This document shows, one piece after another, positions 32,404 through 63,584 of a stretch of 64,000 nucleotides of DNA. Each line of letters starts with the position of its first letter. Position 1 is the stretch's first letter. The notes beneath the pieces are model-generated. The model saw nothing but the letters and a program-made list of their open reading frames with translations. It was not told the origin of the DNA and searched no databases. Source of the DNA: Neoechinorhynchus agilis (taxonomy: Eukaryota > Animalia > Acanthocephala); the NCBI GenBank assembly GCA_051530055.1, contig CM121342.1, positions 15,825,480-15,889,479 on the forward strand. Direction: 5' to 3'. Position numbers and translations under genes: made by a program.

Positions 32404-32580
32404 TTAACGGTTTCGATGAGGAACATTTCAATCACAGTATCAACAGCTAAATTTAGTGGAAAAAGATGTTCTTTAACCTCTCAAAATGGAAGGTGATATT
32501 ATCTTTAGGTTGAATTTTAATTCGATCCCATGAGCACGCAAGCAGAAAAATTTGTAACAAAAAGGACACTTTACAAACGT

Positions 32581-32835
32581 TTAATATGCCCGGTCCGCCA
32601 TTCCTTCATTGACTGCTTTATTGAACAGATCTGCCTGCCTCCCTTCATTTGAACATCTAAGAACGATACTTCGATTTTGACCTCTTGTTACGTATTTTGA
32701 AAAAAGTTCAGGATTTCGTAACTTTGTCTCAGTAAGACATTGGATAGCAGCACGAGCGCATTCGACGGCTATTGAATCAGGGGTCGTGAAGTTATGATCT
32801 CTAACTACAAGCGCTATCTTGTAATCCTTGTCCAT
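32581..32835 (-). pseudogene. Truncated copy of the PTH2-like gene (C-terminal deletion)
   Basis: Identical to 63016-63253 up to NEGM. It then lacks the VATTV...GVGPD...DKITG segment and ends ADRAY*. Confidence 0.8.
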
Positions 32836-32959
32836 TTAAAAACCAGCAAAAAAGAACTCCGAGTCTGTGTCACTCACAAAATCACGAAAGTTGATTTGTT
32901 GCAACTCGTGTCCTGGAAGAAGCATATGAGATTTTTCTGAACTATTTAATACTCCACTG

Positions 32960-33790
32960 ATATATGAACACTCGGAAATTATCCGATCCCTAACCAAAGG
33001 CGTATTTCAAGGTGCTGTGCTGTCACCACTTCTCTTTAATATATCCCTAAACGACCTCAAACCTCTCTCCTCTCATTCTAAACTTTTCTTATATGCCGAC
33101 GAATTCACCCTCATCACTCAATCACTATCACACCTCCCAATCCTTTACCTCTAACGATATCACACACCTAAAAGACTTCTGCACCAATCACAAACTCCAT
33201 CTCAATTTCTCTAAATGCTTCAAAATGATCCCTTAATTCTCCCTAAACCCTATATCCTCCCCGGAGCTTCTAGATGACATCATACGAGTCACCTTCCTAG
33301 GAATTATGGGTTTACAATTTTAATCAAACGTGAAATGGAAATCGTACATTACTCTCTATCTCAAGCTCAATACCTCTAAAATTTATCTCCTCAAACGCCT
33401 CCGAAATTTAATAACCGCTTCACCCGATCTCTCCAAATTTTACTTCAGCTTTATTTTACCTCCCGCACCTACGGTCATCCCGTATTTTGCAACCTATCCA
33501 AATCTCAAATCCGTCCTCTTGAAATGTTTCATAAAAGAGCATCTAAAATTTGCACAAGTAACTCTCCCCTTCTCACCGAATGCCTTGATACTATTTTCAT
33601 AAAACAAAAACGCCTATCAACCCTACCATCACAATTTCTACCGCATATCGCCCCATTTTAACACGAGCATAAAACTCGTAATCCTAGTTCGTTTCATCCT
33701 TCTATACCTCGTACCTCCCTATACCTATGCTCCTTTTTCCATGCTGCCCAATCTTCTCGGATATCATAACTTGAAATGAACCTGGGGAGA
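32960..33790 (+). mobile_element. Decayed L2/CR1-type non-LTR retrotransposon 3' fragment
   Basis: GVFQGAVLSPLLFNISLNDL, YADE and LKW..YI....SKIYLLKRL occur with stops and frameshifts. A sibling copy lies at 51620-52440. Confidence 0.8.
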
Positions 33791-34060
33791 GACAAACCTT
33801 ACAAGCACTCCTGCAAACAATATCTGCCAGTCCCCACCAGAACGGACATAGCAAGACCTGATATTTCCACCCGAAATTTCTTAAACACAAAAAATAATAA
33901 AACGTGTTATTATAAATCCACTGATTTACGAACACTCGGAAATTATTGGCATGGAAAATTAAAGGAAACCTATCATTGGCGTAGTTGTATCCATGGAAAC
34001 TGAAAACAGCAACCCATTCGCATGAGCGAGTAGGACTCGTCCAATCAAGAGAAAGTTCAA

Positions 34061-37000
34061 ATGTCGGTTCCAGTAAATGCAATGGTCAATCGACTCTTGA
34101 CCTATTCCGCATGCCTCTTAGAATGTGGAAGGTGCTATTTGGAATCCGCTAACCTTCAAGTTGAATTCTTTGAAATGGATCGAAGTCAGGATAGAGCAGA
34201 TCAGGAAAACAAAGCGAAAAGGAATCGGCAGGAGGAAGCAGAGAAAACCGAAATCGAAGAGGAGCTTAAGTTTATGAGGGAAGATACCAGCATTGCCGAA
34301 ATTCATTTGAAAAACACTGTCCATGAAAATTGTGATCAAATGAATAGCAGTTCTTTACCGATTTGTCACTATCACTTAGGAGCAGGGCACAAACTGGAAG
34401 TTGCACAAAGAGCGGTGCAATCGTGCTGCCAAATGGTCAGCAGATTGATCCGCCAGATCAATGCCATGAGGCGCACGGATCCCTTGAAGGCAATTCAGCT
34501 TGAAATTGAAACGAAACAGGCTCAACTTCTATTCATTGAGCAATTCAATAGGTTCTTCGAACCAGATGATCTTTTTCGGTATTGTCAGAATAACGAGAAT
34601 TTAAAAGATCAAGTTGATGAACTCGAAGAAAAATTGAATTGTGCGTTCTTAGCACTCGAAGGAGTAAAGACCGCCGAAGAGACTGCGTGTCTTTTGCCAA
34701 CTTGTGAAAGCATTTTACTTTCGATGCAACGAATTCTCGAGACTTTCCTGGAAATAAGGAATGAAGTAGACCAAAAGATCGATGAAAAAGAACAGGAGTA
34801 TGTTTTGTCGACAATTTGAATTTAATTCCAAAATCTAATTAATAGATTCATGTTTGACGCCGGTATTAAACAATCGGCGGATGGTGAAAGTTTAAGTAAA
34901 TTTACGAGATATTGTGTATTTTTATCTCAAATGTTTTTTTAGCAATGGACTACACGATTGTGGTTACCAACGGAGAAGGCGGAATGGAAGTGGATGATGA
35001 GACAAAGACGTATCCGATTTTGCTTAGACTTTTTGGCAAAACTGGAGTAACTCATTATTTTAACCTTAGCAGCTCTTTAGCGAAGAATGAATTGTTTAAA
35101 CCAGAAACCGGCGTTCAATTCCAGTTTAATGGTCGGTCAATAAACACAATCGAAGGCATCGAGATATGTGAATTTGACGGATGGGTAAAGAAATGGGGCA
35201 TCTCAAGCATACAAATACTTTGGAATGATAAAGGAGAACAGCTATCTGAAATGTAAGAAATTCAGCACTTAAGTCGGCAATAAAACGTAAACTGTTTAGA
35301 TTTTCGATAGATACAGACATCGAACCGAGCGATAAAAACTCCATGATCAAGGTATTCATTACAAAAGAAGGCGGGCTGAGCGACCATCTGCCAAACCAAC
35401 GTAAACTCCTCATATTTTCAGTTCTCTAAAACTGAAACATGCCTCTTCCTTTTAGTTTCAGAATCGTTGGAAAACCAAAAGCATGCTAACCACCTTAAAG
35501 GTTTGTTAAAGCTGTTGATCAAATTTAACTACGGTTCAAATTTTTAAGCTGGCTACACTCACCTTGTCCATCTTGGAACATCTTCAGGTCGAATGGAAAA
35601 GTCAACGAGACTGCAACTCACAGTTTATTCGAATTGCGCCAAAATCACAGAACTCATTAATCTTCATTGGAACGAAGGGCGATTTGGCAAAAAGGACGAA
35701 GATGCCGTCTATTTTAAATGGCCTCGGATTAAGAAGGTTTTTAGCTGGGTTGGAGAGAATCTTTGACAATATTTTGAACAGATTAGGGCCATAGATTTGT
35801 CAATCAACGAAACGCCGAAAAGCAATCTGAAGTGTTCATACGTAAAGATAAGAGATTTATCCAACGACACAGAATACCAGTAAGTTCTCTTTTGATGGCG
35901 AATTAATCAAAATTATGTGTAGATTTCCGATTGCAAAAACATTGACAGAAAAACCGGAACGTATTAGTCCGTTCTTAGCACTCGGGAAAGGTAAGGACTT
36001 CTTCTATGCAACTTTTGGCACCGATTCATTAGGGAACACGAGATATCAAGTTCACATAAAGACGGGAAATCGAGACACCCGTGGATTTGAAAGGAAAAAA
36101 CAAATTGTTTATGTGAACTTTTGTTCTCAACAAATAAAGGGCGAACTTCTCATACTACGAGCCAATGCCGTGAATCCGGAGCCATTTAGGCGCGATCAAG
36201 TAGACGTATTTAAGGTTCACAACGTTCGACAAGTTCCCGAAATGACCGAATTGGAGGTATGGCACAACGGTTCCGAAGGAGATTCTTGGTACTGCGATTG
36301 GGTCAAAATAGAAGACATTGAAACGAAAACAGAAACAAAGTCAATTGCACTTTCGTCAATAGTCGATTAAACCGAAAGTTTAGATTCGAAGTAAAGAAGG
36401 TCCTTATAAATAAAGGCGAACGGAAAGTTGGTAAAGGTGTTTTGGTGAAGGCAAACAGATCAGCACTATTTTGTGATGAATATCGTAAGCTTGGCTTATT
36501 TGAGAGAACATTCGAGCATTTGTATTTCAGTAAAGAAATTACAGAGAATGAAAATTGAGAAGGAGGGGAAAGAATATTATATTGTAACTGTGCGAACCGG
36601 GGATCGAGGAAACGTTGATTTTGACGGAAAAATCTTTATTGTCCTGCATGGTGACAAAGGATCATCTGAGATGCTGCGATTATCAGATTCAAAGACTGGC
36701 GGAAGTCCATTTTCAAGATTAAAGGAGGACGTATTCGTTTTGGACAGAATAGACGCTGTAGGAAAGGTGAGAATTTTGGTAGCCATAAATCCAAAGAATA
36801 CTTTGATTGTTGTAAATTAGATAAAGAAGATTGAACTGATGATTGAAGACAGATCAAGGAACGGTTGGTTCTGCCAAGGCATCGATTTAGCCAATTGCGA
36901 CCACGAACATCTTCTGCGGTTGGTATTTTAAGGGTTTGTTTTATATAGCACGAAAGTAGGTTTCCGGTTAATCGTTGGTTGGGCGATAGTAAATTCGGCA

Positions 37001-37600
37001 AAGAAACGAGAATGGTTCTTGAAGAGAACACGAAGCCTAAATTTAGAAGGACGAAATCTGCCACTTTTTCGAAAACGGATTCAGGTAAACCTGTCCAAAA
37101 CAAAATATTGGAAAAATTCAAACCATTTAATATTCCTCAAACAGATAAAGAAAATATTGGAAAACGATCTGGACATAAAAAATCGGTGAAAGTAATAAAG
37201 AATGGCACCCAAATCAAAGGTGTAAATACTTTTTATCATCAGTAAAGATTACCTCATCATAGAAAGTCAAAACGAATCAGAGCCATCCTCTCAAGGGACA
37301 ACCAACGAATCCAAATCAAAGAAGTCAAGAAAGAGGTTCTTTGATAGGAAAAAGAAAGGAACGTTGAACGAAGATGAAGAGGGGGTTAGGAAAGGTAACA
37401 AAGGTAAATTTTTAGAAGATTTGCTGCGATTTGAGATATTCTTCAATTCTTTAAAAATTCTTGCAGAAAAGGAAAAGAATGATTTAATACACAAGAAACA
37501 AAAGAAATCACTAGCCAAGGATTCCACTTCAGAAAACGAAATCCCACTGCAAGAAAAGTCTAAGAAAGGAAACAAAGTATCGGCCAAAAGTAAGTGGTAA
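34061..37600 (+). CDS. Coiled-coil plus at least 3 PLAT/LH2 domains (LOXHD1-like) with a Lys-rich tail, multi-exon; 3' end uncertain
   Basis: PLAT motifs YQVHIKTG...FRRDQVDVF...LEVWHNG...WYCDWVKIED and YIVTVRTGD...VFIVLHGDKGSSE..L...F....DVF are present, with a third degenerate PLAT at 34940-35250. Confidence 0.75.
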
Positions 37601-37998
37601 AGTCGAAAGAGCACATAAACTTGGTGATTAATCGATCGATTTACAGACTCGATAATGAAAAAGTAGCTGTCTTCATCGCTCGGAAAGTCCAGAGCTAAAT
37701 ACGTATTCGATGAAATTAATTTTTTCTGTATATTTCAGACACTAACAAATCGATAGATCAGCCACTAAAAAAATTGATTTGCAAATGCGTTTCATTTCTA
37801 TTTTTAAACAGATAAATCTAAGGCGAAGAAAAGGAAGAAGAAGATTGACGTAATTGATGAATCCCAATAACCAAGGAACGAAAGTGATTCTGGAACTTCA
37901 AGAATAATTTTTTGTTGACTGATATTATTTTGAGGTTTTGAGAGAATGGAGGAGGCAGCTGTGAACATGACATCCAGTGGCTAAACGGAAGATTTATC

Positions 37999-38453
37999 TT
38001 AATCGCTTTGATAATAATCATAATCTTCCTCGTAGACGATTGCAGAATCCACGTAGACCTGCGGTTTGTTTTTCTTTTTCGCTTTTTTGGTACTTTTCAT
38101 TGACTTCTCGAATTTGGCAAGTTTGCTGGTGGCAAAAGATTGAAAGTTAGCATTAAGTTTCTTAAGAGTTTCGCTTGATAATCCGCTCGCCATATTTTCG
38201 ACGAGTTCGAGCAGGAAACCAGCAAAATCACTGACATTTCTACTTGAACGATCTCTGAAGATTGCGGATTGCGAGAGATCGTTGAATGCATACCTGAATC
38301 GATAGATTGATTTGAGCTAATCTTTTTGAGACCGGACTCCAAAAGTGCTCCGTACTGTTCAAATTCATGATCAGTAACCAAGAACACGTCATCAAGAGTT
38401 TCAACGCTGTACACTGAAGAAACGTTTGGTTCGGATTTTTCATTCATCTGCAT
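37999..38453 (-). CDS. Possible small spliced gene of unknown function (ORFs 38097-38453 and 37999-38193)
   Basis: Two overlapping ATG ORFs with protein-like composition. No motif recognised. Confidence 0.3.
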
Positions 38454-38725
38454 TTATACTTTTTAAATAATTTTGAAATAACGAATCGATATAACCAGTT
38501 TTAAATCGCACCGAGCAGAACGATGGCAAAAAATAAATCCGAGAATTTGATTTCCGCTAACAAATCGATGTTTAAACAAACATCGGAGAGAATAAAGAAG
38601 TTTTTGTGAGTCGTTCTCTGAATCTTTGCATAGCAATGCAATAAAAATCATTAAAAAGTAAAGAACGGAAAACGCCGTCAAAATTTGTTTTTTCTTTTTA
38701 TTGATGTGAATTATTTTAGCACTTT

Positions 38726-38853
38726 CCTCCAGGAGGCGGGACTAATCAGTGAGTTTCCTCCCTTCAGCGGTATTTCGTCCCCTTTGGTTGTGTGTCATTG
38801 GCGATCGTGGATTCAAACCCTTCGACCCTGAGAAACTACGAAATGTACAAACT
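38726..38853 (-). mobile_element. TIR/tRNA-like element copy 2, internally deleted and truncated on one side
   Basis: Has the shared body plus GGATTCAAACC, and ends GAAATGTACAAACT. Confidence 0.7.
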
Positions 38854-39243
38854 AAGCTGACGAAATCGGTTTGCTAAACCGCATTTGTAATTGGATCTTT
38901 AATGCGAAACAAATCAATGTCTACCAGTCGGATACTTAAAAAAGATCAAATCATGTTAAATCCTTTTGAGTAATCCCAATAAAACCTAAACTCGAAATAA
39001 CTGAACAAAAGTACGGATGCTATTTGATTATTAGTTCGAATTCCGGCTTTGGGTTTCGGCAAATAAAGATGGAAGAATGCTATATTCAATTTTTAAAGTT
39101 CTCCCGTTATTTAATAATCGTCTTTTTTCCTGGGCATCTTTGTTAAGTGAACGAATGTTGTTCCTTTCAAAATGCCGATTTTGTTTGAGTAAAAATGAAA
39201 TTTTAGGCTAACCCTTCTGAAACAGACAGAAATTATCCCGTTT

Positions 39244-40005
39244 TTATGATGTTATAAAGTAGAAAATATAGTAATTGTTGCCGCGTTCAGCAGTCGCGTA
39301 AAGATCGTTTCCATCGCTGAACAAAATGCGAAAATTTGTGAGCATTAGATCATTGTTCCTGTCGTCGTCACATTTACCGAAAAGTTGAATGTTCAGTTTA
39401 TAGAACAATTCTCGCTCGAGTTCCTTTACGTCAAATACCCGTTGTAAGGGTCGGCCCAAATCTTTTTCCAGCCGAGCTGGACGTTGGAAATAATATTCCA
39501 TGTTGCAGGTTGGTTCCACGCGACAAGCCTTAAGAGCATCTCGGAAGGAGATTCTGGTGAAGGTTGGAACTTTATTAAATCCGTTCAAAGGAGCTACTGG
39601 ATCTTCCAACTCCCATTCATATGCAACCAATGTATCAAGCCGTTCTCTAGATCCGAAATAATCTTTGGGAGCCAAGTTTAAGGAAAACGCGTACTCGTCC
39701 GGACCACCTTGATTTATTTTCCTGGTACGTACTTTGTCAACGCTGGTTTCCCCAATCGGCACAGACTTTATTATCTCATCAGTCAACGGAATACAATTGC
39801 AGGTAAAGACGCCCGACTCATCCATTGCCAAGACGCAAATGGTATCGTCTATTACCATTAGTTCGTGATCCTCAAACTGTTTGCGAATTTCAGCAAGTGC
39901 AGTATCTACGTTCTCAATAGGTTGCGCCATTGATTTATCGTCTGAAAAATCTAATACACGTGACTTATTGGCACTTTTCTGGAGTGGGATTTTAGTTCGC
40001 CTCAA
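39244..40005 (-). CDS. Intronless 253-aa ORF of unknown function
   Basis: 762-bp open frame in AT-rich DNA with globular-looking composition. An identical protein is encoded at 55846-56607. Confidence 0.65.
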   Translation of the reverse strand: MRRTKIPLQKSANKSRVLDFSDDKSMAQPIENVDTALAEIRKQFEDHELMVIDDTICVLAMDESGVFTCNCIPLTDEIIKSVPIGETSVDKVRTRKINQGGPDEYAFSLNLAPKDYFGSRERLDTLVAYEWELEDPVAPLNGFNKVPTFTRISFRDALKACRVEPTCNMEYYFQRPARLEKDLGRPLQRVFDVKELERELFYKLNIQLFGKCDDDRNNDLMLTNFRILFSDGNDLYATAERGNNYYIFYFITS

Positions 40006-41147
40006 GTGGTGGACAAAAGGTCCGCTAAGTTTTAACTACTATAACTCTTTAAGGAAACCTTATTGAACACTAGAAACGTGTGCCCTTTCTAGGACATGAG
40101 AGGTGAGTGACAAAACTTTCGATTTCCGTCGAATTATAGACGTGGCTCTTACCATTCTCAACCTTCGCTCAATTAATCTTAGATCGCTTTTCAAATGAAT
40201 CCCGCGATAAGTACATGGATGCCTTCTCACAATCATGCTTTATAAGTGTACCAAACAAAATATTTTGTCATTTGGTCTCGTTTTGCACCTCGTAGTTTTT
40301 GTTTTGCACAGCAAAAACGAGATGTTAAAAAACACCGAAACTTCTCTGTCAATTTTGAACTAGTGTATTTACTATTCCGGATATTAATCTGATTTTTTTT
40401 GCTTGGCCAACTGCTTTCGCCAATTCTATTCATTTGAGGTACTCCGAATCATTATGAACGCATAACTATTTTTTAGAAAACCCTTCAAAAAATATTTAAT
40501 GCTAATTACTTTTTGTGACTTTGCGCTCTTCTTTTGCCATATTGATCGCCTAAATTTTTGTTGCGCTTCCGAAATCGGAACAGATCTTTCAATGGATTCG
40601 ATCGTGGCAGGCAAGACTTTTTTTATGACATCGTCAGTTTCTTAGCTTTTTTAAAGAGACTGGCGGTCAAATTTAATTACTATAAAGGATACTTTGCCCT
40701 TTTAAGAAGATTATAGATTATAACTACACTTGTTTATGATTTAATGCTTTCAATCAAGATTTTTGTTGCACACAATAAATTTGTTGAAAATGTGGAAATG
40801 ACACGAAGTATATTGGTTTTTAGACAAATTGTTAATGTAAATAAAAAAGTTTAAAGTCCTGTAAAGTACAGCAAGATTTAGGAATCAATTTCAATAAGAA
40901 TCAAATACACACAAAATCTAGGAAGATCCGTTCATATCCGGTTTGGTCGAGCCTGTTCGAATTGTTGCCATGAGCAACTAATGATTGAAGCCAAATGTCA
41001 TAGGACTTTTGAGTTCGTTACGCAAAGTCATATGAAGCGCCGTATGGGTTTTCTTTCCATGAAAGCAAGAATTGCATAATATCAATTTACCTGCAACGAC
41101 CGAGCTCTATTCCCAAATTAAGAAAAACTCCATTGCGTTGCTGCGAA

Positions 41148-44100
41148 ATGTTCGCTTTTTTAGGCCTATTCTTTATATTAGTCAGGAGTGATGATTTTCC
41201 TGGCAAACTGTTCAAAACGAATAGGTAATTGTTCTCACTTATGCCATTCGGATAACGCGCAATTTTCAATAGTCAAAAATACCTTATTCTCGCACCTAAA
41301 GTTTTATACGTTTAAATGAAGTGCCAATCAAAATTGGTGTTTTGATCGCAAATGAGAATTGGCAGGCTGTATCCATCAATGCATATATTGAAGATCAAAA
41401 TGGCCACCTTTTGTACAAACTCGATTCTGAGATTATCAGACCATTCGAACCAAGGACATTTGAGCTTTTGATGGTGGATAAGAACTCGATTCAATCTTTA
41501 AAGTCCGGAATCTTGAAATTGATATTAAGTGGACGGTGCCAAGAATGCTTAGGCATAATTGCGGCATTACTTGAGTGCTTATGTTAGTCATCATTTCACG
41601 CGAGATCGATCCCTTATCGTAAATTAGAAATGCGACAGTAATTAACTGAAACTTTATTATCGCTTTCGTTAATTTTTAAAGGGTTCGTTTATCGGATATT
41701 GTTGCTTAATCGTGATAAAACGGAATGAAAAATAAACCTAGAACAAAATCTGAAAAACCCAAATTCGAAATTGTACCACGTCCTGAATTTTCGGTTTCCG
41801 GTGATCTGAATCTATTTTTTGGATCTATATCAAGTAACGCTGCTCGATAATGCAAGACAACATTATTGAGGAAACTATAACCGTTCAATTATATGGCGCA
41901 AATCTGATGCTTATTATTCAGACTGATAGGAAACTGTACAAACAGGGGGACATAGGTAGCTTGCACTCTTGTCTGTTATTTATCCTTTCGGTTTTTAGTT
42001 TCACTCAGATGTTTGGTTCTATACTCTGATGAGCTAATTGGATATCAAGGACCGATTGTTTTGGCTGTTACGGTATTCTATATTGTAAATACTAAAAAAT
42101 CATCACACATAGTTCTTAGGATCCCGGCGGTAATGTCATTCGATTGTGGGACGACGAGGAAACTAAAGCAGGTGAGTTTTCATCCTTCACAAATCGTAAA
42201 CTTTCACACAACAATAGGGGTATTTTCTGCGGATTTCCAAATCCCTCTTATGACTTCCATAAATGGAAACTACTCAATCGAGTGCCGTGCCCACGATGTG
42301 GTCGCCACTGAAACAGTTGAAGTTATTAATTTTTGTTAGTGCAAGCGATTTTCATTGTACCTGCTAAATCATTTTTCTAGATCGGAAAATAATTGGCCTT
42401 TACATCTATTGTCCCAGTTACCTATTCATTAGATCGTCACATGAACAAACAATTTCTAATGTAGTTCTTCCGATCATCGTCCAGACCATGTACGCAAACA
42501 ATCATCCAGCAGAAACGATATTGGAAATTACTGGCTATTGCTCTGTTTATCAGAAAGCATCCACTAAAGCAGCAATTATTTTCAATTATACGGTTAACGG
42601 GGTATGTTCGTTATAAGAAAAATAACGCAACTTATATCTGTCCGGCATTATATCCGCTGCTTCTTTTCCAATACACACCCACTAAAAGTGTTTAAAAATA
42701 AGGCACACTTTGAAAGTAGTGAATACTTGCTATTTCGCTCTAAATGGTTGTGTTTGTAATTTTATTTTAATCTGCATTTTGGATATTGGATGGTCTCACT
42801 CATTTAGATCATTGGTGAATACTCGATCGAAATACCGATCGGTGCGATATTAGAAATGTATGAGGAAAACAACGAATGTCAGTTTTTGCACGTCTCAGTA
42901 ACAGCAGTCGATCCATGGTATTTTGAGTCCATAAAAGTTTCCAGGACAGTAGAGCTAAGGAAACGAACAATCGATATTGAACTCGTAACTCAGTGTAAAT
43001 ACTTTCCGAATTATGCGAATCTGATTTGGGTAAGCTACATTATCTGAATCCATTCTAAATATCGACAAATCATGAAAAGTTTAGGATATTGGGAATGCAG
43101 GATTCTCTTAATACTTTCAATCTGGCCTATGAATGGTCTACTGAACTTCAAGTACTTTCACTTCAAAACATTACGAGCAATTCTAGTTCTGGAGTTTCTC
43201 AGACGCTTGGAGATGGAACCTTCTCTTTCTTTGAGTTCATAGGACCATTCGAAGTAGACTATTTCGACTTGGTTGCAATTCTTATGCTCGATGATTGGAC
43301 CATGAGGAAAACTTTTGTTTGCAAGAAACAACCATTGGACCACAGATTTATTTCACTCAGAATTACTTCAGATTTGATGGCACAATATCCAGTCAGTTGC
43401 CCATTTATGTGTTTGTCTTCTACCACATGCGTCCAGATTGATTACCCAATATCAATCGAATTGAGTTCAAAGGAACCGTTACTAAAAGCTTACTACACCG
43501 TTTGTTCCTATTGAGCAACTTCGAATCGGAATCGATGCTGACCTAACCACTTAAACTCTAGTTAATGAGCCAGATTAAAAATTCAAAATGTTGACTTTTC
43601 AGCTAAAGGAAGATGTAAAATTGCAGTTCACATAAGCCTAAAGTCGTATTTGTATTCGTACTGGTCAGCATCGATCTCGATTTTACTTAAACATTACAGT
43701 CACATTTTAAGTCGGACATCTAAATTAGGTTATTTCAAGGGGACAGATTTTAATATTTGAAGAAATCGAAATCCTGCATTGCAAAACTGTGGCCTACCTT
43801 CAATTCATCACTAGTGCTATTATGGGTCCAATGGCAAGAATACTCGTGATCGGAATCCGCCAATCAACCGACGATGATGTGTTTTTATCGAACAGCGTTA
43901 GCATACATGTTGACAATTTCAGACAAACTTCAAAAGAGAATCGAATATTTAACGTTGAACTTGTGAAAGCGAAGGACATTTCTGGTCGTACTATAGAAAT
44001 CCACGCACACGGATCGCAAATCGAGTTCGATTGCGGATGGTGGTCATTTTGGTCTAAAAATGAGCACCAACACCAAGTTATAGATGATCTTAAATCGCAG

Positions 44101-51072: not shown

Positions 51073-51142
51073 CTAGGTCTTCACCCGGTAAATAATATGT
51101 TACTGAAAACATTTCGAACCTCGTCGGGTTCATCATCAGTAC
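51073..51142 (-). repeat. Third copy of the hammerhead-like repeat found at 1541-1726
   Basis: TAGGTCTTCACCCGGTAAATA...TTTCGAACCTCGTCGGGTTCATCATCAG. The minus strand reads CTGATGA-T-GAACC-CGACGA-GGTTC-GAAA. Confidence 0.75.
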
Positions 51143-52440: not shown

Positions 52441-52559
52441 TAACAAAATATTAAAAAGAAGTGGTGGAAGGACGACACCTTGAGCGACGCCTATGGTGAC
52501 TGGTTGTGTGATCGAGGATAAAGCTCGGCAATGAATGTATTGTTGGCGATTTTGAAGAT

Positions 52560-53320: not shown

Positions 53321-53322
53321 AT

Positions 53323-54496
53323 CGTGCGCGCGGTGCGTGCATCCATCGTTAGTGTCCGTTTTGTTTAATAAAAGCCAACTGAGGGCCATCACAATTTATT
53401 AAACAAAACTATTCCTATGACGACTTACAATTCCGATATGGATTACAAGAAGGTGATCCATAATTTGTCGCTACCGAGCGAGCTCAACGTCTCGAAGCCT
53501 TCATGGCGTCTTGAACGATTCAACGTATTGCCTCATGAGGAGGGAGCGTTGAGGAAGTACAAGTTATGGAGACGGAATTTCCAACACCTTCTGAAATCAA
53601 TCGATGGAGGTGTTTCTATCGACACTCTACTTCTGAACATAGACGCGGGCGTTTACGAATTCGTCGAAGAGGAGACCTCTCTAGATGATGCTCTGAAAAC
53701 TTTAGAACGTTTATTCCTAAAAGAAAGCAACGAAATCATAGCCAGGTATTTCTTGTCCATACGAAAACAGGCAGACAACGAAGATATCGACCAATTTATT
53801 CAATCCCTCCGATCGTTGGCTAAAAATTGTTATTTCAAAAATGTGTCCGCTGAGGAAGCTCGGGACGATTTCCTTCGTGATTCGTTCATTGCTGGACTGA
53901 GATCTGACGGACGACAGGATTTTGCGGTGGAAGCTACAGTTATCGATGTTCTCCTATAGTATCCGATTCCGACCCGGTAAAGACAATTTGAGTGCGGACG
54001 CACTATCGAGAAATGTATGTGCGTCAATGAACATATCGTTCAATAAACTAAAAGACGTTCAGCGGTCTCTCGGCCATCCCGGAAACACTAGGCTACTCCA
54101 TTTCATTCGACAGCAAAACTTACCGTTCGATTTGAATGACGTGCGAAAGATAACCGCAGAATGTCCCATTTGCTGCCACTTGAAACCTCGCTTTTTCAAA
54201 CCTCAATCGAGCTTGCCCTTCAGCGGTATTTCGTCCCCTTTGGTTGTGCGTCATTGGTGGCAACGGATTCGAACCACTGGACCCTTAATCGGGATCACGG
54301 GCATTAGTTCACTTGACCACTTCGACACAACTACGGAATGTACAAACTCAGCCAATTTTATATTTATTAATTCAAGGCCATTGAGTTAGGATTTTGGAGG
54401 TATCTGAGGATCCGGAGGAATGTACAAATATAAAACTTCCCACGTGCGCGCGGTGCGTGCATCCATCGTTAGTGTCCGTTTTGTTTAATTAAAGCC
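53323..54496 (+). mobile_element. Internally deleted Ty3/Gypsy LTR retrotransposon (gag, RNase H end, integrase Zn-finger) between 54-bp direct repeats
   Basis: Gag RKQADNEDIDQFIQSLRSLAKNC.F...LRDSFIAGLRS, then YSIRFRPGKDNLSADALSR and GHPG...CPIC. Direct repeats lie at 53323-53376 and 54443-54496. Confidence 0.85.
54216..54350 (-). mobile_element. TIR/tRNA-like element copy 3, with the best-preserved Pol III A and B boxes; an opposite-orientation end fragment lies at 54395-54428
   Basis: The minus strand has A box TGGTCAAGTGA (54309-54319) and B box GGTTCGAATCC (54265-54275), 33 nt apart. The copy ends GGAATGTACAAACTCA. Confidence 0.72.
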
Positions 54497-54546
54497 TGTG
54501 GTGGCTCGCCTAATTGATCCCAAAATTGATCCCGAAATCGTCGGTC

Positions 54547-54702
54547 AACTTTAGGTGCGAGAATAAGGTATTTTTGACTATTGAAAATTGCGCGTTATCC
54601 GAATGGCATAAATGAGAACAATTACCTATTCGTTTTGAACAGTTTGCCAGGAAAATCATCACTCCTGACTAATATAAAGAATAGGCATAGAAAAGGGAAC
54701 AT
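54547..54702 (-). pseudogene. Duplicated 5' end of Mcr (exon 1, intron 1 and 30 nt of exon 2)
   Basis: Reads MFPFLCLFFILVRSDDFPGKLFKTN|SQKYLILAPKV, then switches to unrelated sequence at 54546. Confidence 0.8.
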
Positions 54703-55845
54703 TTCGCAGCAACGCAATGGAGTTTTTCTTAATTTGGGAATGGAGCTCGGTCGTTGCAGGTAAATTGATATTATGCAATTCTTGCTTTCATGGAAAGAAA
54801 ACCCATACGGCGCTTCATATGACTTTGCGTAACGAACTCAAAAGTCCTATGACATTTGGCTTCAATCATTAGTTGCTCATGGCAACAATTCGAACAGGCT
54901 CGACCAAACCGGATATGAACGGATCTTCCTAGATTTTGTGTGTATTTGATTCTTATTGAAATTGATTCCTAAATCTTGCTGTACTTTACAGGACTTTAAA
55001 CTTTTTTATTTACATTAACAATTTGTCTAAAAACCAATATACTTCGTGTCATTTCCACATTTTCAACAAATTTATTGTGTGCAACAAAAATCTTGATTGA
55101 AAGCATTAAATCATAAACAAGTGTAGTTATAATCTATAATCTTCTTAAAAGGGCAAAGTATCCTTTATAGTAATTAAATTTGACCGCCAGTCTCTTTAAA
55201 AAAGCTAAGAAACTGACGATGTCATAAAAAAAGTCTTGCCTGCCCACGATCGAATCCATTGAAAGATCTGTTCCGATTTCGGAAGCGCAACAAAAATTTA
55301 GGCGATCAATATGGCAAAAGAAGAGCGCAAAGTCACAAAAAGTAATTAGCATTGAATATTTTTTGAAGGGTTTTCTAAAAAAATAGTTATGCGTTCATAA
55401 TGATTCGGAGTACCTCAAATGAATAGAATTGGCGAAAGCAGTTGGCCAAGCAAAAAAATCAGATTAATATCCGGAATAGTAAATACACTAGTTCAAAATT
55501 GACAGAGAAGTTTCGGTGTTTTTTAACATCTCGTTTTTGCTGTGCAAAACAAAAACTACGAGGTGCAAAACGAGACCAAATGACAAAATATTTTGTTTGG
55601 TACACTTATAAAGCATGATTGTGAGAAGGCATCCATGTACTTATCGCGGGATTCATTTGAAAAGCGATCTAAGATTAATTGAGCGAAGGTTGAGAATGGT
55701 AAGAGCCACGTCTATAATTCGACGGAAATCGAAAGTTTCGTCACTCACCTCTCATGTCCTAGAAAGGGCACACGTTTCTAGTGTTCAATAAGGTTTCCTT
55801 AAAGAGTTATAGTAGTTAAAACTTAGCGGACCTTTTGTCCACCAC

Positions 55846-56607
55846 TTGAGGCGAACTAAAATCCCACTCCAGAAAAGTGCCAATAAGTCACGTGTATTAG
55901 ATTTTTCAGACGATAAATCAATGGCGCAACCTATTGAGAACGTAGATACTGCACTTGCTGAAATTCGCAAACAGTTTGAGGATCACGAACTAATGGTAAT
56001 AGACGATACCATTTGCGTCTTGGCAATGGATGAGTCGGGCGTCTTTACCTGCAATTGTATTCCGTTGACTGATGAGATAATAAAGTCTGTGCCGATTGGG
56101 GAAACCAGCGTTGACAAAGTACGTACCAGGAAAATAAATCAAGGTGGTCCGGACGAGTACGCGTTTTCCTTAAACTTGGCTCCCAAAGATTATTTCGGAT
56201 CTAGAGAACGGCTTGATACATTGGTTGCATATGAATGGGAGTTGGAAGATCCAGTAGCTCCTTTGAACGGATTTAATAAAGTTCCAACCTTCACCAGAAT
56301 CTCCTTCCGAGATGCTCTTAAGGCTTGTCGCGTGGAACCAACCTGCAACATGGAATATTATTTCCAACGTCCAGCTCGGCTGGAAAAGGATTTGGGCCGA
56401 CCCTTACAACGGGTATTTGACGTAAAGGAACTCGAGCGAGAACTGTTCTATAAACTGAACATTCAACTTTTCGGTAAATGTGACGACGACAGGAACAATG
56501 ATCTAATGCTCACAAATTTTCGCATTTTGTTCAGCGATGGAAACGATCTTTACGCGACTGCTGAACGCGGCAACAATTACTATATTTTCTACTTTATAAC
56601 ATCATAA
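55846..56607 (+). CDS. Duplicate of the intronless 253-aa ORF
   Basis: Translation identical to 39244-40005. Confidence 0.65.
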   Translation: MRRTKIPLQKSANKSRVLDFSDDKSMAQPIENVDTALAEIRKQFEDHELMVIDDTICVLAMDESGVFTCNCIPLTDEIIKSVPIGETSVDKVRTRKINQGGPDEYAFSLNLAPKDYFGSRERLDTLVAYEWELEDPVAPLNGFNKVPTFTRISFRDALKACRVEPTCNMEYYFQRPARLEKDLGRPLQRVFDVKELERELFYKLNIQLFGKCDDDRNNDLMLTNFRILFSDGNDLYATAERGNNYYIFYFITS

Positions 56608-56997
56608 AAACGGGATAATTTCTGTCTGTTTCAGAAGGGTTAGCCTAAAATTTCATTTTTACTCAAACAAAATCGGCATTTTGAAAGGAACAACATTCGT
56701 TCACTTAACAAAGATGCCCAGGAAAAAAGACGATTATTAAATAACGGGAGAACTTTAAAAATTGAATATAGCATTCTTCCATCTTTATTTGCCGAAACCC
56801 AAAGCCGGAATTCGAACTAATAATCAAATAGCATCCGTACTTTTGTTCAGTTATTTCGAGTTTAGGTTTTATTGGGATTACTCAAAAGGATTTAACATGA
56901 TTTGATCTTTTTTAAGTATCCGACTGGTAGACATTGATTTGTTTCGCATTAAAGATCCAATTACAAATGCGGTTTAGCAAACCGATTTCGTCAGCTT

Positions 56998-57125
56998 AGT
57001 TTGTACATTTCGTAGTTTTTCAGGGTCGAAGGGTTTGAATCCACGATCGCCAATGACACACAACCAAAGGGGACGAAATACCGCTGAAGGGAGGAAACTC
57101 ACTGATTAGTCCCGCCTCCTGGAGG
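56998..57125 (+). mobile_element. TIR/tRNA-like element (duplicate of copy 2)
   Basis: Mirror of 38726-38853. Confidence 0.7.
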
Positions 57126-57397
57126 AAAGTGCTAAAATAATTCACATCAATAAAAAGAAAAAACAAATTTTGACGGCGTTTTCCGTTCTTTACTTTTTAA
57201 TGATTTTTATTGCATTGCTATGCAAAGATTCAGAGAACGACTCACAAAAACTTCTTTATTCTCTCCGATGTTTGTTTAAACATCGATTTGTTAGCGGAAA
57301 TCAAATTCTCGGATTTATTTTTTGCCATCGTTCTGCTCGGTGCGATTTAAAACTGGTTTTATCGATTCGTTATTTCAAAATTATTTAAAAAGTATAA

Positions 57398-57852
57398 ATG
57401 CAGATGAATGAAAAATCCGAACCAAACGTTTCTTCAGTGTACAGCGTTGAAACTCTTGATGACGTGTTCTTGGTTACTGATCATGAATTTGAACAGTACG
57501 GAGCACTTTTGGAGTCCGGTCTCAAAAAGATTAGCTCAAATCAATCTATCGATTCAGGTATGCATTCAACGATCTCTCGCAATCCGCAATCTTCAGAGAT
57601 CGTTCAAGTAGAAATGTCAGTGATTTTGCTGGTTTCCTGCTCGAACTCGTCGAAAATATGGCGAGCGGATTATCAAGCGAAACTCTTAAGAAACTTAATG
57701 CTAACTTTCAATCTTTTGCCACCAGCAAACTTGCCAAATTCGAGAAGTCAATGAAAAGTACCAAAAAAGCGAAAAAGAAAAACAAACCGCAGGTCTACGT
57801 GGATTCTGCAATCGTCTACGAGGAAGATTATGATTATTATCAAAGCGATTAA
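57398..57852 (+). CDS. Duplicate of the possible small gene at 37999-38453
   Basis: Identical ORF translations. Confidence 0.3.
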
Positions 57853-58250
57853 GATAAATCTTCCGTTTAGCCACTGGATGTCATGTTCACAGCTGCCTCC
57901 TCCATTCTCTCAAAACCTCAAAATAATATCAGTCAACAAAAAATTATTCTTGAAGTTCCAGAATCACTTTCGTTCCTTGGTTATTGGGATTCATCAATTA
58001 CGTCAATCTTCTTCTTCCTTTTCTTCGCCTTAGATTTATCTGTTTAAAAATAGAAATGAAACGCATTTGCAAATCAATTTTTTTAGTGGCTGATCTATCG
58101 ATTTGTTAGTGTCTGAAATATACAGAAAAAATTAATTTCATCGAATACGTATTTAGCTCTGGACTTTCCGAGCGATGAAGACAGCTACTTTTTAATTATC
58201 GAGTCTGTAAATCGATCGATTAATCACCAAGTTTATGTGCTCTTTCGACT

Positions 58251-61200
58251 TTACCACTTACTTTTGGCCGATACTTTGTTTCCTTTCTTAGACTTTTCTT
58301 GCAGTGGGATTTCGTTTTCTGAAGTGGAATCCTTGGCTAGTGATTTCTTTTGTTTCTTGTGTATTAAATCATTCTTTTCCTTTTCTGCAAGAATTTTTAA
58401 AGAATTGAAGAATATCTCAAATCGCAGCAAATCTTCTAAAAATTTACCTTTGTTACCTTTCCTAACCCCCTCTTCATCTTCGTTCAACGTTCCTTTCTTT
58501 TTCCTATCAAAGAACCTCTTTCTTGACTTCTTTGATTTGGATTCGTTGGTTGTCCCTTGAGAGGATGGCTCTGATTCGTTTTGACTTTCTATGATGAGGT
58601 AATCTTTACTGATGATAAAAAGTATTTACACCTTTGATTTGGGTGCCATTCTTTATTACTTTCACCGATTTTTTATGTCCAGATCGTTTTCCAATATTTT
58701 CTTTATCTGTTTGAGGAATATTAAATGGTTTGAATTTTTCCAATATTTTGTTTTGGACAGGTTTACCTGAATCCGTTTTCGAAAAAGTGGCAGATTTCGT
58801 CCTTCTAAATTTAGGCTTCGTGTTCTCTTCAAGAACCATTCTCGTTTCTTTGCCGAATTTACTATCGCCCAACCAACGATTAACCGGAAACCTACTTTCG
58901 TGCTATATAAAACAAACCCTTAAAATACCAACCGCAGAAGATGTTCGTGGTCGCAATTGGCTAAATCGATGCCTTGGCAGAACCAACCGTTCCTTGATCT
59001 GTCTTCAATCATCAGTTCAATCTTCTTTATCTAATTTACAACAATCAAAGTATTCTTTGGATTTATGGCTACCAAAATTCTCACCTTTCCTACAGCGTCT
59101 ATTCTGTCCAAAACGAATACGTCCTCCTTTAATCTTGAAAATGGACTTCCGCCAGTCTTTGAATCTGATAATCGCAGCATCTCAGATGATCCTTTGTCAC
59201 CATGCAGGACAATAAAGATTTTTCCGTCAAAATCAACGTTTCCTCGATCCCCGGTTCGCACAGTTACAATATAATATTCTTTCCCCTCCTTCTCAATTTT
59301 CATTCTCTGTAATTTCTTTACTGAAATACAAATGCTCGAATGTTCTCTCAAATAAGCCAAGCTTACGATATTCATCACAAAATAGTGCTGATCTGTTTGC
59401 CTTCACCAAAACACCTTTACCAACTTTCCGTTCGCCTTTATTTATAAGGACCTTCTTTACTTCGAATCTAAACTTTCGGTTTAATCGACTATTGACGAAA
59501 GTGCAATTGACTTTGTTTCTGTTTTCGTTTCAATGTCTTCTATTTTGACCCAATCGCAGTACCAAGAATCTCCTTCGGAACCGTTGTGCCATACCTCCAA
59601 TTCGGTCATTTCGGGAACTTGTCGAACGTTGTGAACCTTAAATACGTCTACTTGATCGCGCCTAAATGGCTCCGGATTCACGGCATTGGCTCGTAGTATG
59701 AGAAGTTCGCCCTTTATTTGTTGAGAACAAAAGTTCACATAAACAATTTGTTTTTTCCTTTCAAATCCACGGGTGTCTCGATTTCCCGTCTTTATGTGAA
59801 CTTGATATCTCGTGTTCCCTAATGAATCGGTGCCAAAAGTTGCATAGAAGAAGTCCTTACCTTTCCCGAGTGCTAAGAACGGACTAATACGTTCCGGTTT
59901 TTCTGTCAATGTTTTTGCAATCGGAAATCTACACATAATTTTGATTAATTCGCCATCAAAAGAGAACTTACTGGTATTCTGTGTCGTTGGATAAATCTCT
60001 TATCTTTACGTATGAACACTTCAGATTGCTTTTCGGCGTTTCGTTGATTGACAAATCTATGGCCCTAATCTGTTCAAAATATTGTCAAAGATTCTCTCCA
60101 ACCCAGCTAAAAACCTTCTTAATCCGAGGCCATTTAAAATAGACGGCATCTTCGTCCTTTTTGCCAAATCGCCCTTCGTTCCAATGAAGATTAATGAGTT
60201 CTGTGATTTTGGCGCAATTCGAATAAACTGTGAGTTGCAGTCTCGTTGACTTATCCATTCGACCTGCAGATGTTCCAAGATGGACAAGGTGAGTGTAGCC
60301 AGCTTAAAAATTTGAACCGTAGTTAAATTTGATCAACAGCTTTAACAAACCTTTAAGGTGGTTAGCATGCTTTTGGTTTTCCAATGATTCTGAAACTAAA
60401 AGGAAGAGGCATGTTTCAGTTTTAGAGAACTGAAAATATGAGGAGTTTACGTTGGTTTGGCAGATGGTCGCTCAGCCCGCCTTCTTTTGTAATGAATACC
60501 TTGATCATGGAGTTTTTATCGCTCGGTTCGATGTCTGTATCTATCGAAAATCTAAACAGTTTACGTTTTATTGCCGACTTAAGTGCTGAATTTCTTACAT
60601 TTCAGATAGCTGTTCTCCTTTATCATTCCAAAGTATTTGTATGCTTGAGATGTCCCATTTCTTTACCCATCCGTCAAATTCACATATCTCGATGCCTTCG
60701 ATTGTGTTTATTGACCGACCATTAAACTGGAATTGAACGCCGGTTTCTGGTTTAAACAATTCATTCTTCGCTAAAGAGCTGCTAAGGTTAAAATAATGAG
60801 TTACTCCAGTTTTGCCAAAAAGTCTAAGCAAAATCGGATACGTCTTTGTCTCATCATCCACTTCCATTCCGCCTTCTCCGTTGGTAACCACAATCGTGTA
60901 GTCCATTGCTAAAAAAACATTTGAGATAAAAATACACAATATCTCCTAAATTTACTTAAACTTTCACCATCCGCCGATTGTTTAATACCGGCGTCAAACA
61001 TGAATCTATTAATTAGATTTTGGAATTAAATTCAAATTGTCGACAAAACATACTCCTGTTCTTTTTCATCGATCTTTTGGTCTACTTCATTCCTTATTTC
61101 CAGGAAAGTCTCGAGAATTCGTTGCATCGAAAGTAAAATGCTTTCACAAGTTGGCAAAAGACACGCAGTCTCTTCGGCGGTCTTTACTCCTTCGAGTGCT

Positions 61201-61790
61201 AAGAACGCACAATTCAATTTTTCTTCGAGTTCATCAACTTGATCTTTTAAATTCTCGTTATTCTGACAATACCGAAAAAGATCATCTGGTTCGAAGAACC
61301 TATTGAATTGCTCAATGAATAGAAGTTGAGCCTGTTTCGTTTCAATTTCAAGCTGAATTGCCTTCAAGGGATCCGTGCGCCTCATGGCATTGATCTGGCG
61401 GATCAATCTGCTGACCATTTGGCAGCACGATTGCACCGCTCTTTGTGCAACTTCCAGTTTGTGCCCTGCTCCTAAGTGATAGTGACAAATCGGTAAAGAA
61501 CTGCTATTCATTTGATCACAATTTTCATGGACAGTGTTTTTCAAATGAATTTCGGCAATGCTGGTATCTTCCCTCATAAACTTAAGCTCCTCTTCGATTT
61601 CGGTTTTCTCTGCTTCCTCCTGCCGATTCCTTTTCGCTTTGTTTTCCTGATCTGCTCTATCCTGACTTCGATCCATTTCAAAGAATTCAACTTGAAGGTT
61701 AGCGGATTCCAAATAGCACCTTCCACATTCTAAGAGGCATGCGGAATAGGTCAAGAGTCGATTGACCATTGCATTTACTGGAACCGACAT
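58251..61790 (-). CDS. Duplicate multi-PLAT (LOXHD1-like) gene
   Basis: Mirror of 34061-37600. One visible amino-acid change in a PLAT exon is KWGISS versus KWDISS. Confidence 0.75.
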
Positions 61791-62060
61791 TTGAACTTTC
61801 TCTTGATTGGACGAGTCCTACTCGCTCATGCGAATGAGTTGCTGTTTTCAGTTTCCATGGATACAACTACGCCAATGATAGGTTTCCTTTAATTTTCCAT
61901 GCCAATAATTTCCGAGTGTTCGTAAATCAGTGGATTTATAATAACACGTTTTATTATTTTTTGTGTTTAAGAAATTTCGGGTGGAAATATCAGGTCTTGC
62001 TATGTCCGTTCTGGTGGGGACTGGCAGATATTGTTTGCAGGAGTGCTTGTAAGGTTTGTC

Positions 62061-62891
62061 TCTCCCCAGGTTCATTTCAAGTTATGATATCCGAGAAGAT
62101 TGGGCAGCATGGAAAAAGGAGCATAGGTATAGGGAGGTACGAGGTATAGAAGGATGAAACGAACTAGGATTACGAGTTTTATGCTCGTGTTAAAATGGGG
62201 CGATATGCGGTAGAAATTGTGATGGTAGGGTTGATAGGCGTTTTTGTTTTATGAAAATAGTATCAAGGCATTCGGTGAGAAGGGGAGAGTTACTTGTGCA
62301 AATTTTAGATGCTCTTTTATGAAACATTTCAAGAGGACGGATTTGAGATTTGGATAGGTTGCAAAATACGGGATGACCGTAGGTGCGGGAGGTAAAATAA
62401 AGCTGAAGTAAAATTTGGAGAGATCGGGTGAAGCGGTTATTAAATTTCGGAGGCGTTTGAGGAGATAAATTTTAGAGGTATTGAGCTTGAGATAGAGAGT
62501 AATGTACGATTTCCATTTCACGTTTGATTAAAATTGTAAACCCATAATTCCTAGGAAGGTGACTCGTATGATGTCATCTAGAAGCTCCGGGGAGGATATA
62601 GGGTTTAGGGAGAATTAAGGGATCATTTTGAAGCATTTAGAGAAATTGAGATGGAGTTTGTGATTGGTGCAGAAGTCTTTTAGGTGTGTGATATCGTTAG
62701 AGGTAAAGGATTGGGAGGTGTGATAGTGATTGAGTGATGAGGGTGAATTCGTCGGCATATAAGAAAAGTTTAGAATGAGAGGAGAGAGGTTTGAGGTCGT
62801 TTAGGGATATATTAAAGAGAAGTGGTGACAGCACAGCACCTTGAAATACGCCTTTGGTTAGGGATCGGATAATTTCCGAGTGTTCATATAT
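62061..62891 (-). mobile_element. Duplicate L2/CR1 fragment
   Basis: Mirror of 32960-33790. Confidence 0.8.
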
Positions 62892-63015
62892 CAGTGGAGT
62901 ATTAAATAGTTCAGAAAAATCTCATATGCTTCTTCCAGGACACGAGTTGCAACAAATCAACTTTCGTGATTTTGTGAGTGACACAGACTCGGAGTTCTTT
63001 TTTGCTGGTTTTTAA

Positions 63016-63366
63016 ATGGACAAGGATTACAAGATAGCGCTTGTAGTTAGAGATCATAACTTCACGACCCCTGATTCAATAGCCGTCGAATGCGCTCGTG
63101 CTGCTATCCAATGTCTTACTGAGACAAAGTTACGAAATCCTGAACTTTTTTCAAAATACGTAACAAGAGGTCAAAATCGAAGTATCGTTCTTAGATGTTC
63201 AAATGAAGGGAGGCAGGCAGATCTGTTCAATAAAGCAGTCAATGAAGGAATGGTTGCTACAACGGTAACTTATCCAACTGGAATGGTTGATCTGAGCGTA
63301 CTTGGCGTAGGACCGGATACCCGTTTACGAATAGATAAAATTACCGGACATCTTAAACGTTTGTAA
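63016..63366 (+). CDS. PTRH2: Peptidyl-tRNA hydrolase 2-like protein, full-length fold with divergent active site
   Basis: YKIALVVR...AVECARAA...NPEL...GQ...VL....SVLGVGPD....IDKITGHLK matches the PTH2 fold end to end. Confidence 0.75.
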   Translation: MDKDYKIALVVRDHNFTTPDSIAVECARAAIQCLTETKLRNPELFSKYVTRGQNRSIVLRCSNEGRQADLFNKAVNEGMVATTVTYPTGMVDLSVLGVGPDTRLRIDKITGHLKRL

Positions 63367-63584
63367 AGAGTCTTTTCGGTTACAAATTTTTCTGCTTGCG
63401 TGCTCATGGGATAGAATTAAAATTCAACTCTTGCACTTAAAGATAATACCGTTTTCTATTTAGAGAGGTTAAAGGACATCTTTTTATTGGAGACATTTTT
63501 CAAATTAATTACCGATAGAAAATCCTTTGGGTTAGTCAAAGTATAATTGTGGTGAAAATACTCCGGGTAATAGCAAATTTGATT

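Follow-up and report, generated by a model that had tools for sequence, protein, structure and literature searches.

A large gene-bearing inverted duplication in the genome assembly of the acanthocephalan Neoechinorhynchus agilis

The palindromes of primate and mouse sex chromosomes (e.g., P1 to P8 of the human Y chromosome and those of the X chromosome) are built from arms of tens of kilobases that are >99.7% identical, enclose a unique spacer, mirror whole genes, and show structural change concentrated near their centers. Here, we describe an inverted duplication with these same features (including a spacer of ~13 kb) in contig CM121342.1 of Neoechinorhynchus agilis, an acanthocephalan parasite of mullets (GenBank assembly GCA_051530055.1). 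It was analyzed in a stretch of 64,000 nt (referred to here as the window) and in the adjoining sequence to the right. The locus differs from the sex-chromosome palindromes in that its arms carry housekeeping-type genes (CDT1, SRP68, and PTH2), its arm identity is stepped, and its assembly was made from pooled animals.

Inverted duplications made by replication template switching or fold-back repair, e.g., by microhomology-mediated break-induced replication or fork stalling and template switching (MMBIR/FoSTeS) and including duplication-inverted triplication-duplication rearrangements (DUP-TRP/INV-DUP), are characterized by one non-homologous junction in unique sequence, substitutions clustered at the junction, another end within inverted repeats, and a single-copy segment between the arms. 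The present locus shares the non-homologous junction, the clustered substitutions, and the single-copy segment, and its other end lies in satellite arrays that may have served as the inverted repeats, but neither microhomology nor inserted bases could be demonstrated, and the direction and order of events are our reconstruction. The false palindromes of the 2013 Adineta vaga draft genome (PMC8494291) likewise come from the Syndermata and from non-inbred material and have mirrored gene copies on one scaffold; at the N. agilis locus, however, no scaffold gap separates the copies, the second arm adjoins distinct sequence on either side, and the outer 25 kb is identical between the arms instead of showing allelic divergence. 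Compared with Drosophila Mcr (TEP6) and vertebrate CD109, the gene in the spacer shares the N terminus of the TEP family (YLILAPKV.. and IQTDRKLYKQGD), a putative mid-protein LDLa module, and a lost thioester, and differs in that its similarity is very weak, its LDLa module falls below the family cut-off, and its frame can cross the arm boundary only with a 56-nt intron or a frameshift.

Extent and divergence of the arms

Window position p corresponds to position 15,825,479 + p of CM121342.1 (16,375,937 bp; one of three N. agilis chromosomes). DNA rightward of base 64000, which was taken from the same GenBank record as loci L002, L003, and L004, is given in extended coordinates (i.e., record position minus 15,825,479). 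The window and these three loci tile without any N up to extended coordinate 95015, and no N run was found in the window or L001 to L004 (extended 1 to 95015), where a closed gap is still conceivable.

The inverted duplication consists of a left arm at 7138 to 41303 (34,166 nt) and a right arm at extended 54547 to 90865 (36,319 nt), separated by a single-copy spacer of 13,243 bp (41304 to 54546). The total structure measures 83.7 kb (~84 kb), lies ~460 kb from the chromosome end, and carries about ten genes. The initial annotation of the window had described an 8.7-kb gene-bearing palindrome around a 13.2-kb spacer. We confirmed the inverted repeat, its genes, and the spacer, but this 8.7-kb repeat makes up no more than the inner quarter of the duplication; because the right arm leaves the window at base 64000, the size and edges proposed there were wrong.

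Divergence between the arms was strongly non-uniform. The outer stretch of the left arm (7138 to 32508; 25,371 nt) is an exact mirror match without a single substitution (L002 1 to 19394 matches window 13115 to 32508 exactly, and L003 4151 to 21737 matches window 7138 to 24724 exactly). A 2-nt indel follows at 32509, after which identity resumes to 32602. The whole 4.3-kb array of a 114-bp satellite is included in this exactly identical stretch. In the inner block (32598 to 41303 versus 63253 to 54547), the identity was 99.76% over 8708 alignment columns, with 18 substitutions and three 1-bp indels. The unique spacer is thus flanked by inverted arms that are >99% identical throughout the aligned outer (100%) and inner (99.76%) blocks.

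All 18 substitutions were confined to the inner 8.7 kb (binomial, 2e-11), and the outer block, which has none, should contain 39 at the rate of this core (P ~1e-17). Five of the 18 were clustered at 41108 to 41238, with the other 13 spread over 8.5 kb; the Poisson probability of this cluster was ~1.7e-5 for one 200-bp window and ~7.5e-4 when corrected for 43 windows. Divergence rises in steps: it is 0 in the outer 25.4 kb, 0.15% across the inner block, and 2.5% within the final 200 bp. Taken at face value, the lack of outer-block substitutions relative to the core rate rejects a copy of a single age with uniform mutation. The excess of differences at the inner margin had been noted before, as five amino acid differences in a mirrored 60-aa open reading frame (ORF), and was reproduced; the ORF is antisense (61 aa; 41090 to 41272), and the same substitutions cause two changes in the real signal peptide of the TEP gene. 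The 252-aa and 253-aa ORFs translate identically in the two arms, as reported in the initial annotation; the latter differs by two substitutions, both of them synonymous.

The differences between the arms look like real variants, given that transitions (11) outnumber transversions (7) and that both changes in the 291-aa gene holding the 253-aa ORF are synonymous; two of the three 1-bp indels lie in T runs. Several processes would fit the stepped pattern, namely, gene conversion stopped by a heterology, a very recent copy taken from a homologue whose differences lay only near the TEP gene, or assembly behavior. Similarly, the five substitutions next to the junction would fit either error-prone synthesis near a template switch or poor homogenization at the end of homology. 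The 100% identity of the outer block is compatible alike with youth, with conversion-type homogenization stopped by the 2.15-kb heterology described below, and with consensus collapse.

The PTH2 region and the ends of the arms

Two segments, 32455 to 32597 and 63330 to 63485, had been interpreted as homologous but diverged edges of the palindrome, i.e., as the decayed margins of an older duplication. In our alignment, 32460 to 32594 was 84.6% like 63485 to 63343, with 89 extra bases on the right side. The true mirror of the left segment lies farther out, at extended 65543 to 65407, and is identical to it apart from the 2-nt indel. The 84.6% partner lies within an island of 2,150 nt (extended 63254 to 65403) that is present in the right arm only. 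Outward, it consists of 89 nt of PTH2 coding sequence, a segment A' (63343 to 63485; 84.6% to left 32460 to 32594), 1.6 kb of unique sequence, and a segment B1 (91% to left 32598 to 32887). The first 238 nt of the arm core, the 89 nt, and A' make up an intact PTH2 gene, whereas B1 and the true mirror of 32460 to 32594 form a frameshifted PTH2 pseudogene that lacks 86 nt of coding sequence. The 84.6% match is therefore a mis-pairing of the 3' parts of tandem PTH2 paralogues, the arms remain identical for 25 kb beyond it, and the argument for an older duplication with decayed margins fails. Diverged edges around a homogenized core should not be carried forward. The outer edge was also considered as a LINE (long interspersed nuclear element) fragment with independent transposon copies; this was ruled out because the segment is PTH2 coding sequence and the arms continue in L002.

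In the left arm, the corresponding PTH2 remnant is a hybrid, with the 3' part of the pseudogene (32460 to 32594) joined to the 5' part of the functional gene (32598 to 32835). It tracks the pseudogene copy to 32602 and the functional copy from 32598, with a 5-nt overlap. Judged from this sequence, the hybrid is the product expected of annealing or unequal exchange between 290-bp direct repeats, with the deletion of 2.15 kb, and the right arm would represent the ancestral state of the PTH2 region.

At the inner end, the left arm runs contiguously into the body of the TEP gene and so has the ancestral context there, while the right arm ends in a cut-off copy of the TEP 5' end. The arm end lies three bases past the last codon of YLILAPK, at the putative border of TEP exon 2 and intron 2. 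At the right inner junction, TEP exon 2 (CCTAAAGTT) is joined to the leader of a retroelement (GACCGACGATTTCGG) with no homology across the join; 54546/54547 is thus a non-homologous breakpoint in unique sequence. The adjoining long terminal repeat (LTR) retroelement debris contains 54-nt direct repeats (53323 to 53376 and 54443 to 54496), and TGGTGGCTCGCC, 47 nt before the right-arm junction, resembles a primer-binding site, which is how we read it. The frame of the left TEP gene can be carried across the boundary either by removal of a 56-nt GT-AG intron (41301 to 41356) or by a 1- to 2-nt frameshift in a T run. The intron is plausible given the 43- to 56-nt introns and the GTTTGA and GTTAGT donors of this species; for the frameshift option, the skipped bases read IRLNEVPIKIGVLIAN, which resembles the first strand of the TEP MG1 domain. 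The inverted repeat ends no more than 3 nt from this frame problem.

On its outer side, the duplication stops exactly where the left satellite array begins, and beyond this point the left arm adjoins unique sequence with a nucleotide-sugar transporter gene. On the right side, the satellite continues for at least 4.1 kb past the duplicated array, head to tail, behind one irregular truncated monomer. A satellite at the outer junction would be consistent with resolution in pre-existing inverted repeats and would also favor misassembly. The 114-bp satellite has higher-order periods of 227 and 341, and the right-hand satellite (L003 1 to 8492) contains at least 75 copies.

Origin of the duplication

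We consider it moderately probable that the locus is a real inverted segmental duplication, either recent or homogenized, that was made by template switching. The non-homologous inner junction, the far end in a satellite, and the cluster of substitutions on the junction side (5 in the last 200 bp versus 13 in 8.5 kb) fit such an origin. Replication or repair synthesis moving rightward through the spacer would have left its template in the LTR-retroelement leader at 54546 and resumed on the opposite strand at 41303. Approximately 36 kb would then have been copied backwards, from the TEP 5' end through CDT1 to the 4.3-kb satellite, after which homology to an inverted array of this satellite would have led synthesis back to the chromosome. 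Later, 2.15 kb would have been lost from the left arm via the direct repeats (290 bp) that PTH2 and its pseudogene form, which would have destroyed the left PTH2; the loss would have been tolerated because the right arm keeps an intact copy. The sequence itself shows the arrangement in the assembly, the genes that it carries, and the mis-pairing of paralogues; the order of these events and the existence of both arms on a single chromosome we infer. Loss of PTH2 from the arm in ancestral context is easier to tolerate if a second copy lies on the same chromosome, which favors a real second arm. A real structure here would be the first large palindrome to be documented in an acanthocephalan, duplicating about ten genes (CDT1, SRP68, and PTH2 among them). 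It would preserve a formation scar, with a breakpoint in a gene exon at one end and a satellite at the other, together with early asymmetric decay that has left one arm without PTH2, and would thus offer a usable case for studying the origin and homogenization of inverted duplications outside sex chromosomes.

Several points weigh against this explanation and in favor of an assembly artefact, which we regard as possible but rather unlikely. In that case, the locus would be single copy and the second arm would be the same region as found in a different haplotype among the pooled worms, threaded in after the spacer through a real but allelic junction (e.g., a 13-kb spacer inversion polymorphism) or a chimeric join, with an exit through the satellite, a route to which we give similarly limited credence. 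The assembly was built on DNA pooled from ~50 worms, male and female, using ONT (Oxford Nanopore Technologies) R9.4 reads (4.17 Gb), Illumina reads, and very little HiFi data, in a multi-step pipeline consisting of a MaSuRCA hybrid assembly with Flye, purge_dups, instaGRAAL Hi-C scaffolding, manual curation, and gap closing with TGS-GapCloser (PMC12690905). In the related rotifer A. vaga, palindromes of the draft genome were scaffolding artefacts of phased haplotypes (PMC8494291). Moreover, exact identity over 25.4 kb, satellite included, is what one repeat consensus written twice would give, and the identity values may be technical; the 0.2% single nucleotide variants, the homopolymer indels, and the one 2.15-kb indel look like ordinary allelic variation; the rise in divergence toward the spacer boundary is as in standard versus inverted haplotypes near a breakpoint; the satellite exit is an easy site for a false join; and the right junction at the inner end shows no visible microhomology. 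On the other side, an artefact would have to arise without any N run or gap over 95 kb and would need two false joins made independently, of which one would link unique non-homologous sequences (54546/54547), and the deletion haplotype would be a PTH2-null allele. Repeat-graph assemblers do not normally enter a single-copy sequence of 25 kb into one contig twice. ONT coverage was ~90x, and duplicated BUSCOs (benchmarking universal single-copy orthologs) are low (1.8 to 2.7%) in this 46.2-Mb genome of three large scaffolds (PMC12690905). The right arm also has its own distinct sequence at both ends. A haplotig in the simple sense would keep allelic flanks and leave a gap, and was ruled out, as was a fold-back chimeric-read artefact, since the center is 13 kb of unique non-palindromic sequence. 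If the structure were an artefact, ~36 kb and ten GenBank gene models (roughly ACOME3_008448 to ACOME3_008456) would be spurious duplicates, and expression analyses that drop multi-mapping reads would under-count all of the duplicated genes.

The initial annotation proposed an older palindrome in which gene conversion between the arms keeps them identical, as on sex chromosomes. In our judgment, an old and real palindrome with arms held alike by repeated conversion of this kind, on the model of primate X and Y palindromes, is unlikely; it is a sub-case of the real inverted duplication rather than an exclusive alternative to it. Conversion would have been efficient in the outer block, hindered in the 8.7-kb block that the heterology and the spacer enclose, and least effective over the final 200 bp, a scheme that we likewise hold to be improbable. 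The stepped divergence (0, 0.15%, and 2.5%) and the face-value rejection of a uniform single-age copy speak for conversion, and the inverted gene-bearing duplication and the inner-margin excess of differences on which the proposal was built both stood. Its evidence for age did not: the sole indication that the duplication is older than the divergence of its arms was the mis-paired PTH2 paralogue, and the arms, one indel aside, show none of the arm-specific transposon insertions or decay expected of an old duplication. The identity values, too, may be technical. Arm-to-arm gene conversion is neither demonstrated nor excluded, and the stepped divergence on which it would rest is also compatible with technical and allelic causes. 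For a real palindrome, flipping of the spacer by recombination between the arms, which had also been suggested, is possible in principle. That the locus is a genuine population-wide 84-kb palindrome with homogenized arms, split by the 2.15-kb heterology into a homogenized outer and a diverging inner block, is doubtful; if true, it would provide a snapshot of a heterology that stops conversion and starts the decay of a palindrome, as well as the first validated palindrome in the Syndermata, where those reported earlier were artefacts. The proposal in its literal form, an 8.7-kb palindrome bearing the decayed outer margins of an older duplication, can draw on the 84.6% similarity of the two margin segments, but it is highly improbable given that the arms are 100% identical for 25 kb beyond these margins, that the true partner of the left segment is identical to it, and that the match is to a tandem paralogue.

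The arms are known here from a single assembly, the only one for N. agilis in the collections searched. The genome paper gives no karyotype or sex-chromosome assignment (PMC12690905), and a literature search by assembly accession found no citing paper.

Genes and repeats of the spacer and arms

The spacer was reported to hold Mcr. As a description of gene architecture, "Mcr-like" is fair: the predicted protein begins with a signal peptide, after which comes a 48-nt intron in the gene, and reads SQKYLILAPKV in exon 2 and IQTDRKLYKQGD further on. In a phmmer search of PDB, it was colinear with CD109 over ~200 residues across the thioester region (E 6.5e-5), with a second weak colinear stretch. 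The thioester motif GCGEQ itself is absent, with MPL--VDQ (MPLVDQ) aligning with MPYGCGEQ of CD109. A putative LDLa module lies at ~44300 to 44420 (Pfam Ldl_recept_a, E 3e-4; 21.3 bits, below the 24.1 cut-off), and several LDLa modules in PDB match the protein at E 0.002 to 0.1. No Pfam A2M-family match was obtained, a search of 5.8 billion proteins with a concatenated TEP query found no relative, and the similarity to CD109 is very weak; on these comparisons, membership in the TEP family can be proposed tentatively, the lineage being very divergent. A prokaryotic reading of "Mcr" as methyl-coenzyme M reductase was ruled out by the sparse short ORFs, the 43- to 56-nt GT-AG introns, and the lack of tRNA or Rfam matches in the window.

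Genes were called in both copies of the arms with Pfam families, and the coordinates of all features are listed in Table 1. From the outside in, the arms contain CDT1, a histidine acid phosphatase, SRP68, a GMIP-like FCH protein, an ammonium transporter, the PTH2 region, a LINE reverse transcriptase fragment, a PLAT-repeat gene, a 98-aa gene, a 291-aa gene, and the TEP 5' end. The 252-aa ORF is the first exon of the 953-aa PLAT-repeat gene; it had no PDB match, and a homologue search with it was also empty. For the 291-aa gene and its 253-aa ORF, no Pfam or PDB relative was found, and exact-product look-ups of the 252-aa, 84-aa, and 180-aa ORFs returned no matching record. The reverse transcriptase fragment of the arm is 75% alike to a spacer copy at 51679 to 52519 (blastn and tblastx).

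TABLE 1 Features of the inverted duplication and its spacer (window positions)
Feature	Position	Strand	Remarks
Outer block, left arm	7138-32602		Mirror is extended 90865-65404, outside the window; identical string apart from one indel of 2 nt
114-bp satellite array, 38 copies	7145-11479		Tandem Repeats Finder; outer end of left arm
CDT1 (617-aa ORF)	12871-14724	+	Gene call, outer block
Histidine acid phosphatase	17125-17700	+	Gene call, outer block
SRP68	Outer block	-	Gene call
GMIP-like FCH protein	From 23115	+	ACOME3_008439 (left), ACOME3_008453 (right)
Ammonium transporter	~28200-30526	-	Gene call, outer block
Left PTH2 remnant (hybrid), 84-aa ORF	32460-32835	-	Pfam PTH2 positions 1-75/115 only
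Inner block, left arm	32598-41303		99.76% to 63253-54547
Decayed non-LTR retrotransposon reverse transcriptase fragment (LINE)	32930-33840	+	Pfam RVT_1, 32.8 bits versus 29.6 cut-off
PLAT/LH2-repeat gene, 953-aa model	34061-37870	+	Mirror 61790-57981 (-); PF01477 gene call; Pfam PLAT on ORF 35915-36370
98-aa gene model, no assigned function	38097-38447	-	Mirror 57404-57754 (+); no Pfam match
291-aa gene model holding 253-aa ORF, no assigned function	39244-40236	-	Mirror 55615-56607 (+)
Cluster of 5 substitutions	41108-41238		TEP promoter, exon 1, intron 1; just inside inner boundary
TEP-family gene ("Mcr-like"), putative	41148-48315 (3' end approximate)	+	ATG 41148; 48-nt intron 41225-41272; sequence reading
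Spacer	41304-54546		TEP body, G+C-rich 48.9-50.4 kb, retroelement debris 51.6-54.5 kb; no internal inverted match
Two decayed non-LTR reverse transcriptase fragments	51643-53395	-	Pfam RVT_1 on three ORFs; similar to arm copy
LTR-retroelement debris adjoining right arm	53323-54546	+	gag-like ORF; weak integrase zinc-finger ORF (Integrase_H2C2, E 0.044)
Inner block, right arm	54547-63253		Inner end is truncated TEP promoter, exon 1, and exon 2 start, fused to unrelated sequence
Intact single-exon PTH2, 116 aa, right arm only	63016-63366	+	Pfam PTH2, E 3.6e-13, positions 1-114/115; gene call
Start of island (right arm only)	63254-64000		Continues past the window to extended 65403

GenBank annotates both arm copies. 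Gene models differ between base-identical copies (12871 to 27578 versus L002/L003), with CDT1 at 617 versus 578 aa, SRP68 at 427 + 162 versus 559 aa, and the GMIP-like protein at 939/682 versus 932 aa; this instability probably stems from multi-mapping of RNA-seq reads in the duplicated region. ORFs in the window are few and short. Introns are very short (43 to 56 nt; e.g., in 5644 to 6739 and at 41225 to 41272), with donors that include GTTTGA and GTTAGT, in keeping with the compact 46-Mb genome.

Within the spacer, 48909 to 50446 is a G+C-rich (~46%), low-complexity segment that has no Pfam match and in which long ORFs on the two strands overlap, one of those on the minus strand being 384 aa. 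A 433-bp unit is repeated in tandem at 2951 to 4715 (~3.5 to 4 copies that are 92 to 97% alike), immediately beyond the left arm and upstream of the gene for the nucleotide-sugar transporter. A short dispersed repeat, probably a SINE-like (short interspersed nuclear element) element or a piece of a retroelement, has copies 85 to 97% alike in the outer arm block (32239 to 32388), in the inner arm block (38726 to 38829; mirror, 57019 to 57125), and in the spacer adjoining the right arm (54216 to 54428). Finally, a 190-bp self-complementary element at 1540 to 1727 (an 85% hairpin), with a related half-copy in the spacer at 51065 to 51140, looks like a miniature inverted-repeat element.

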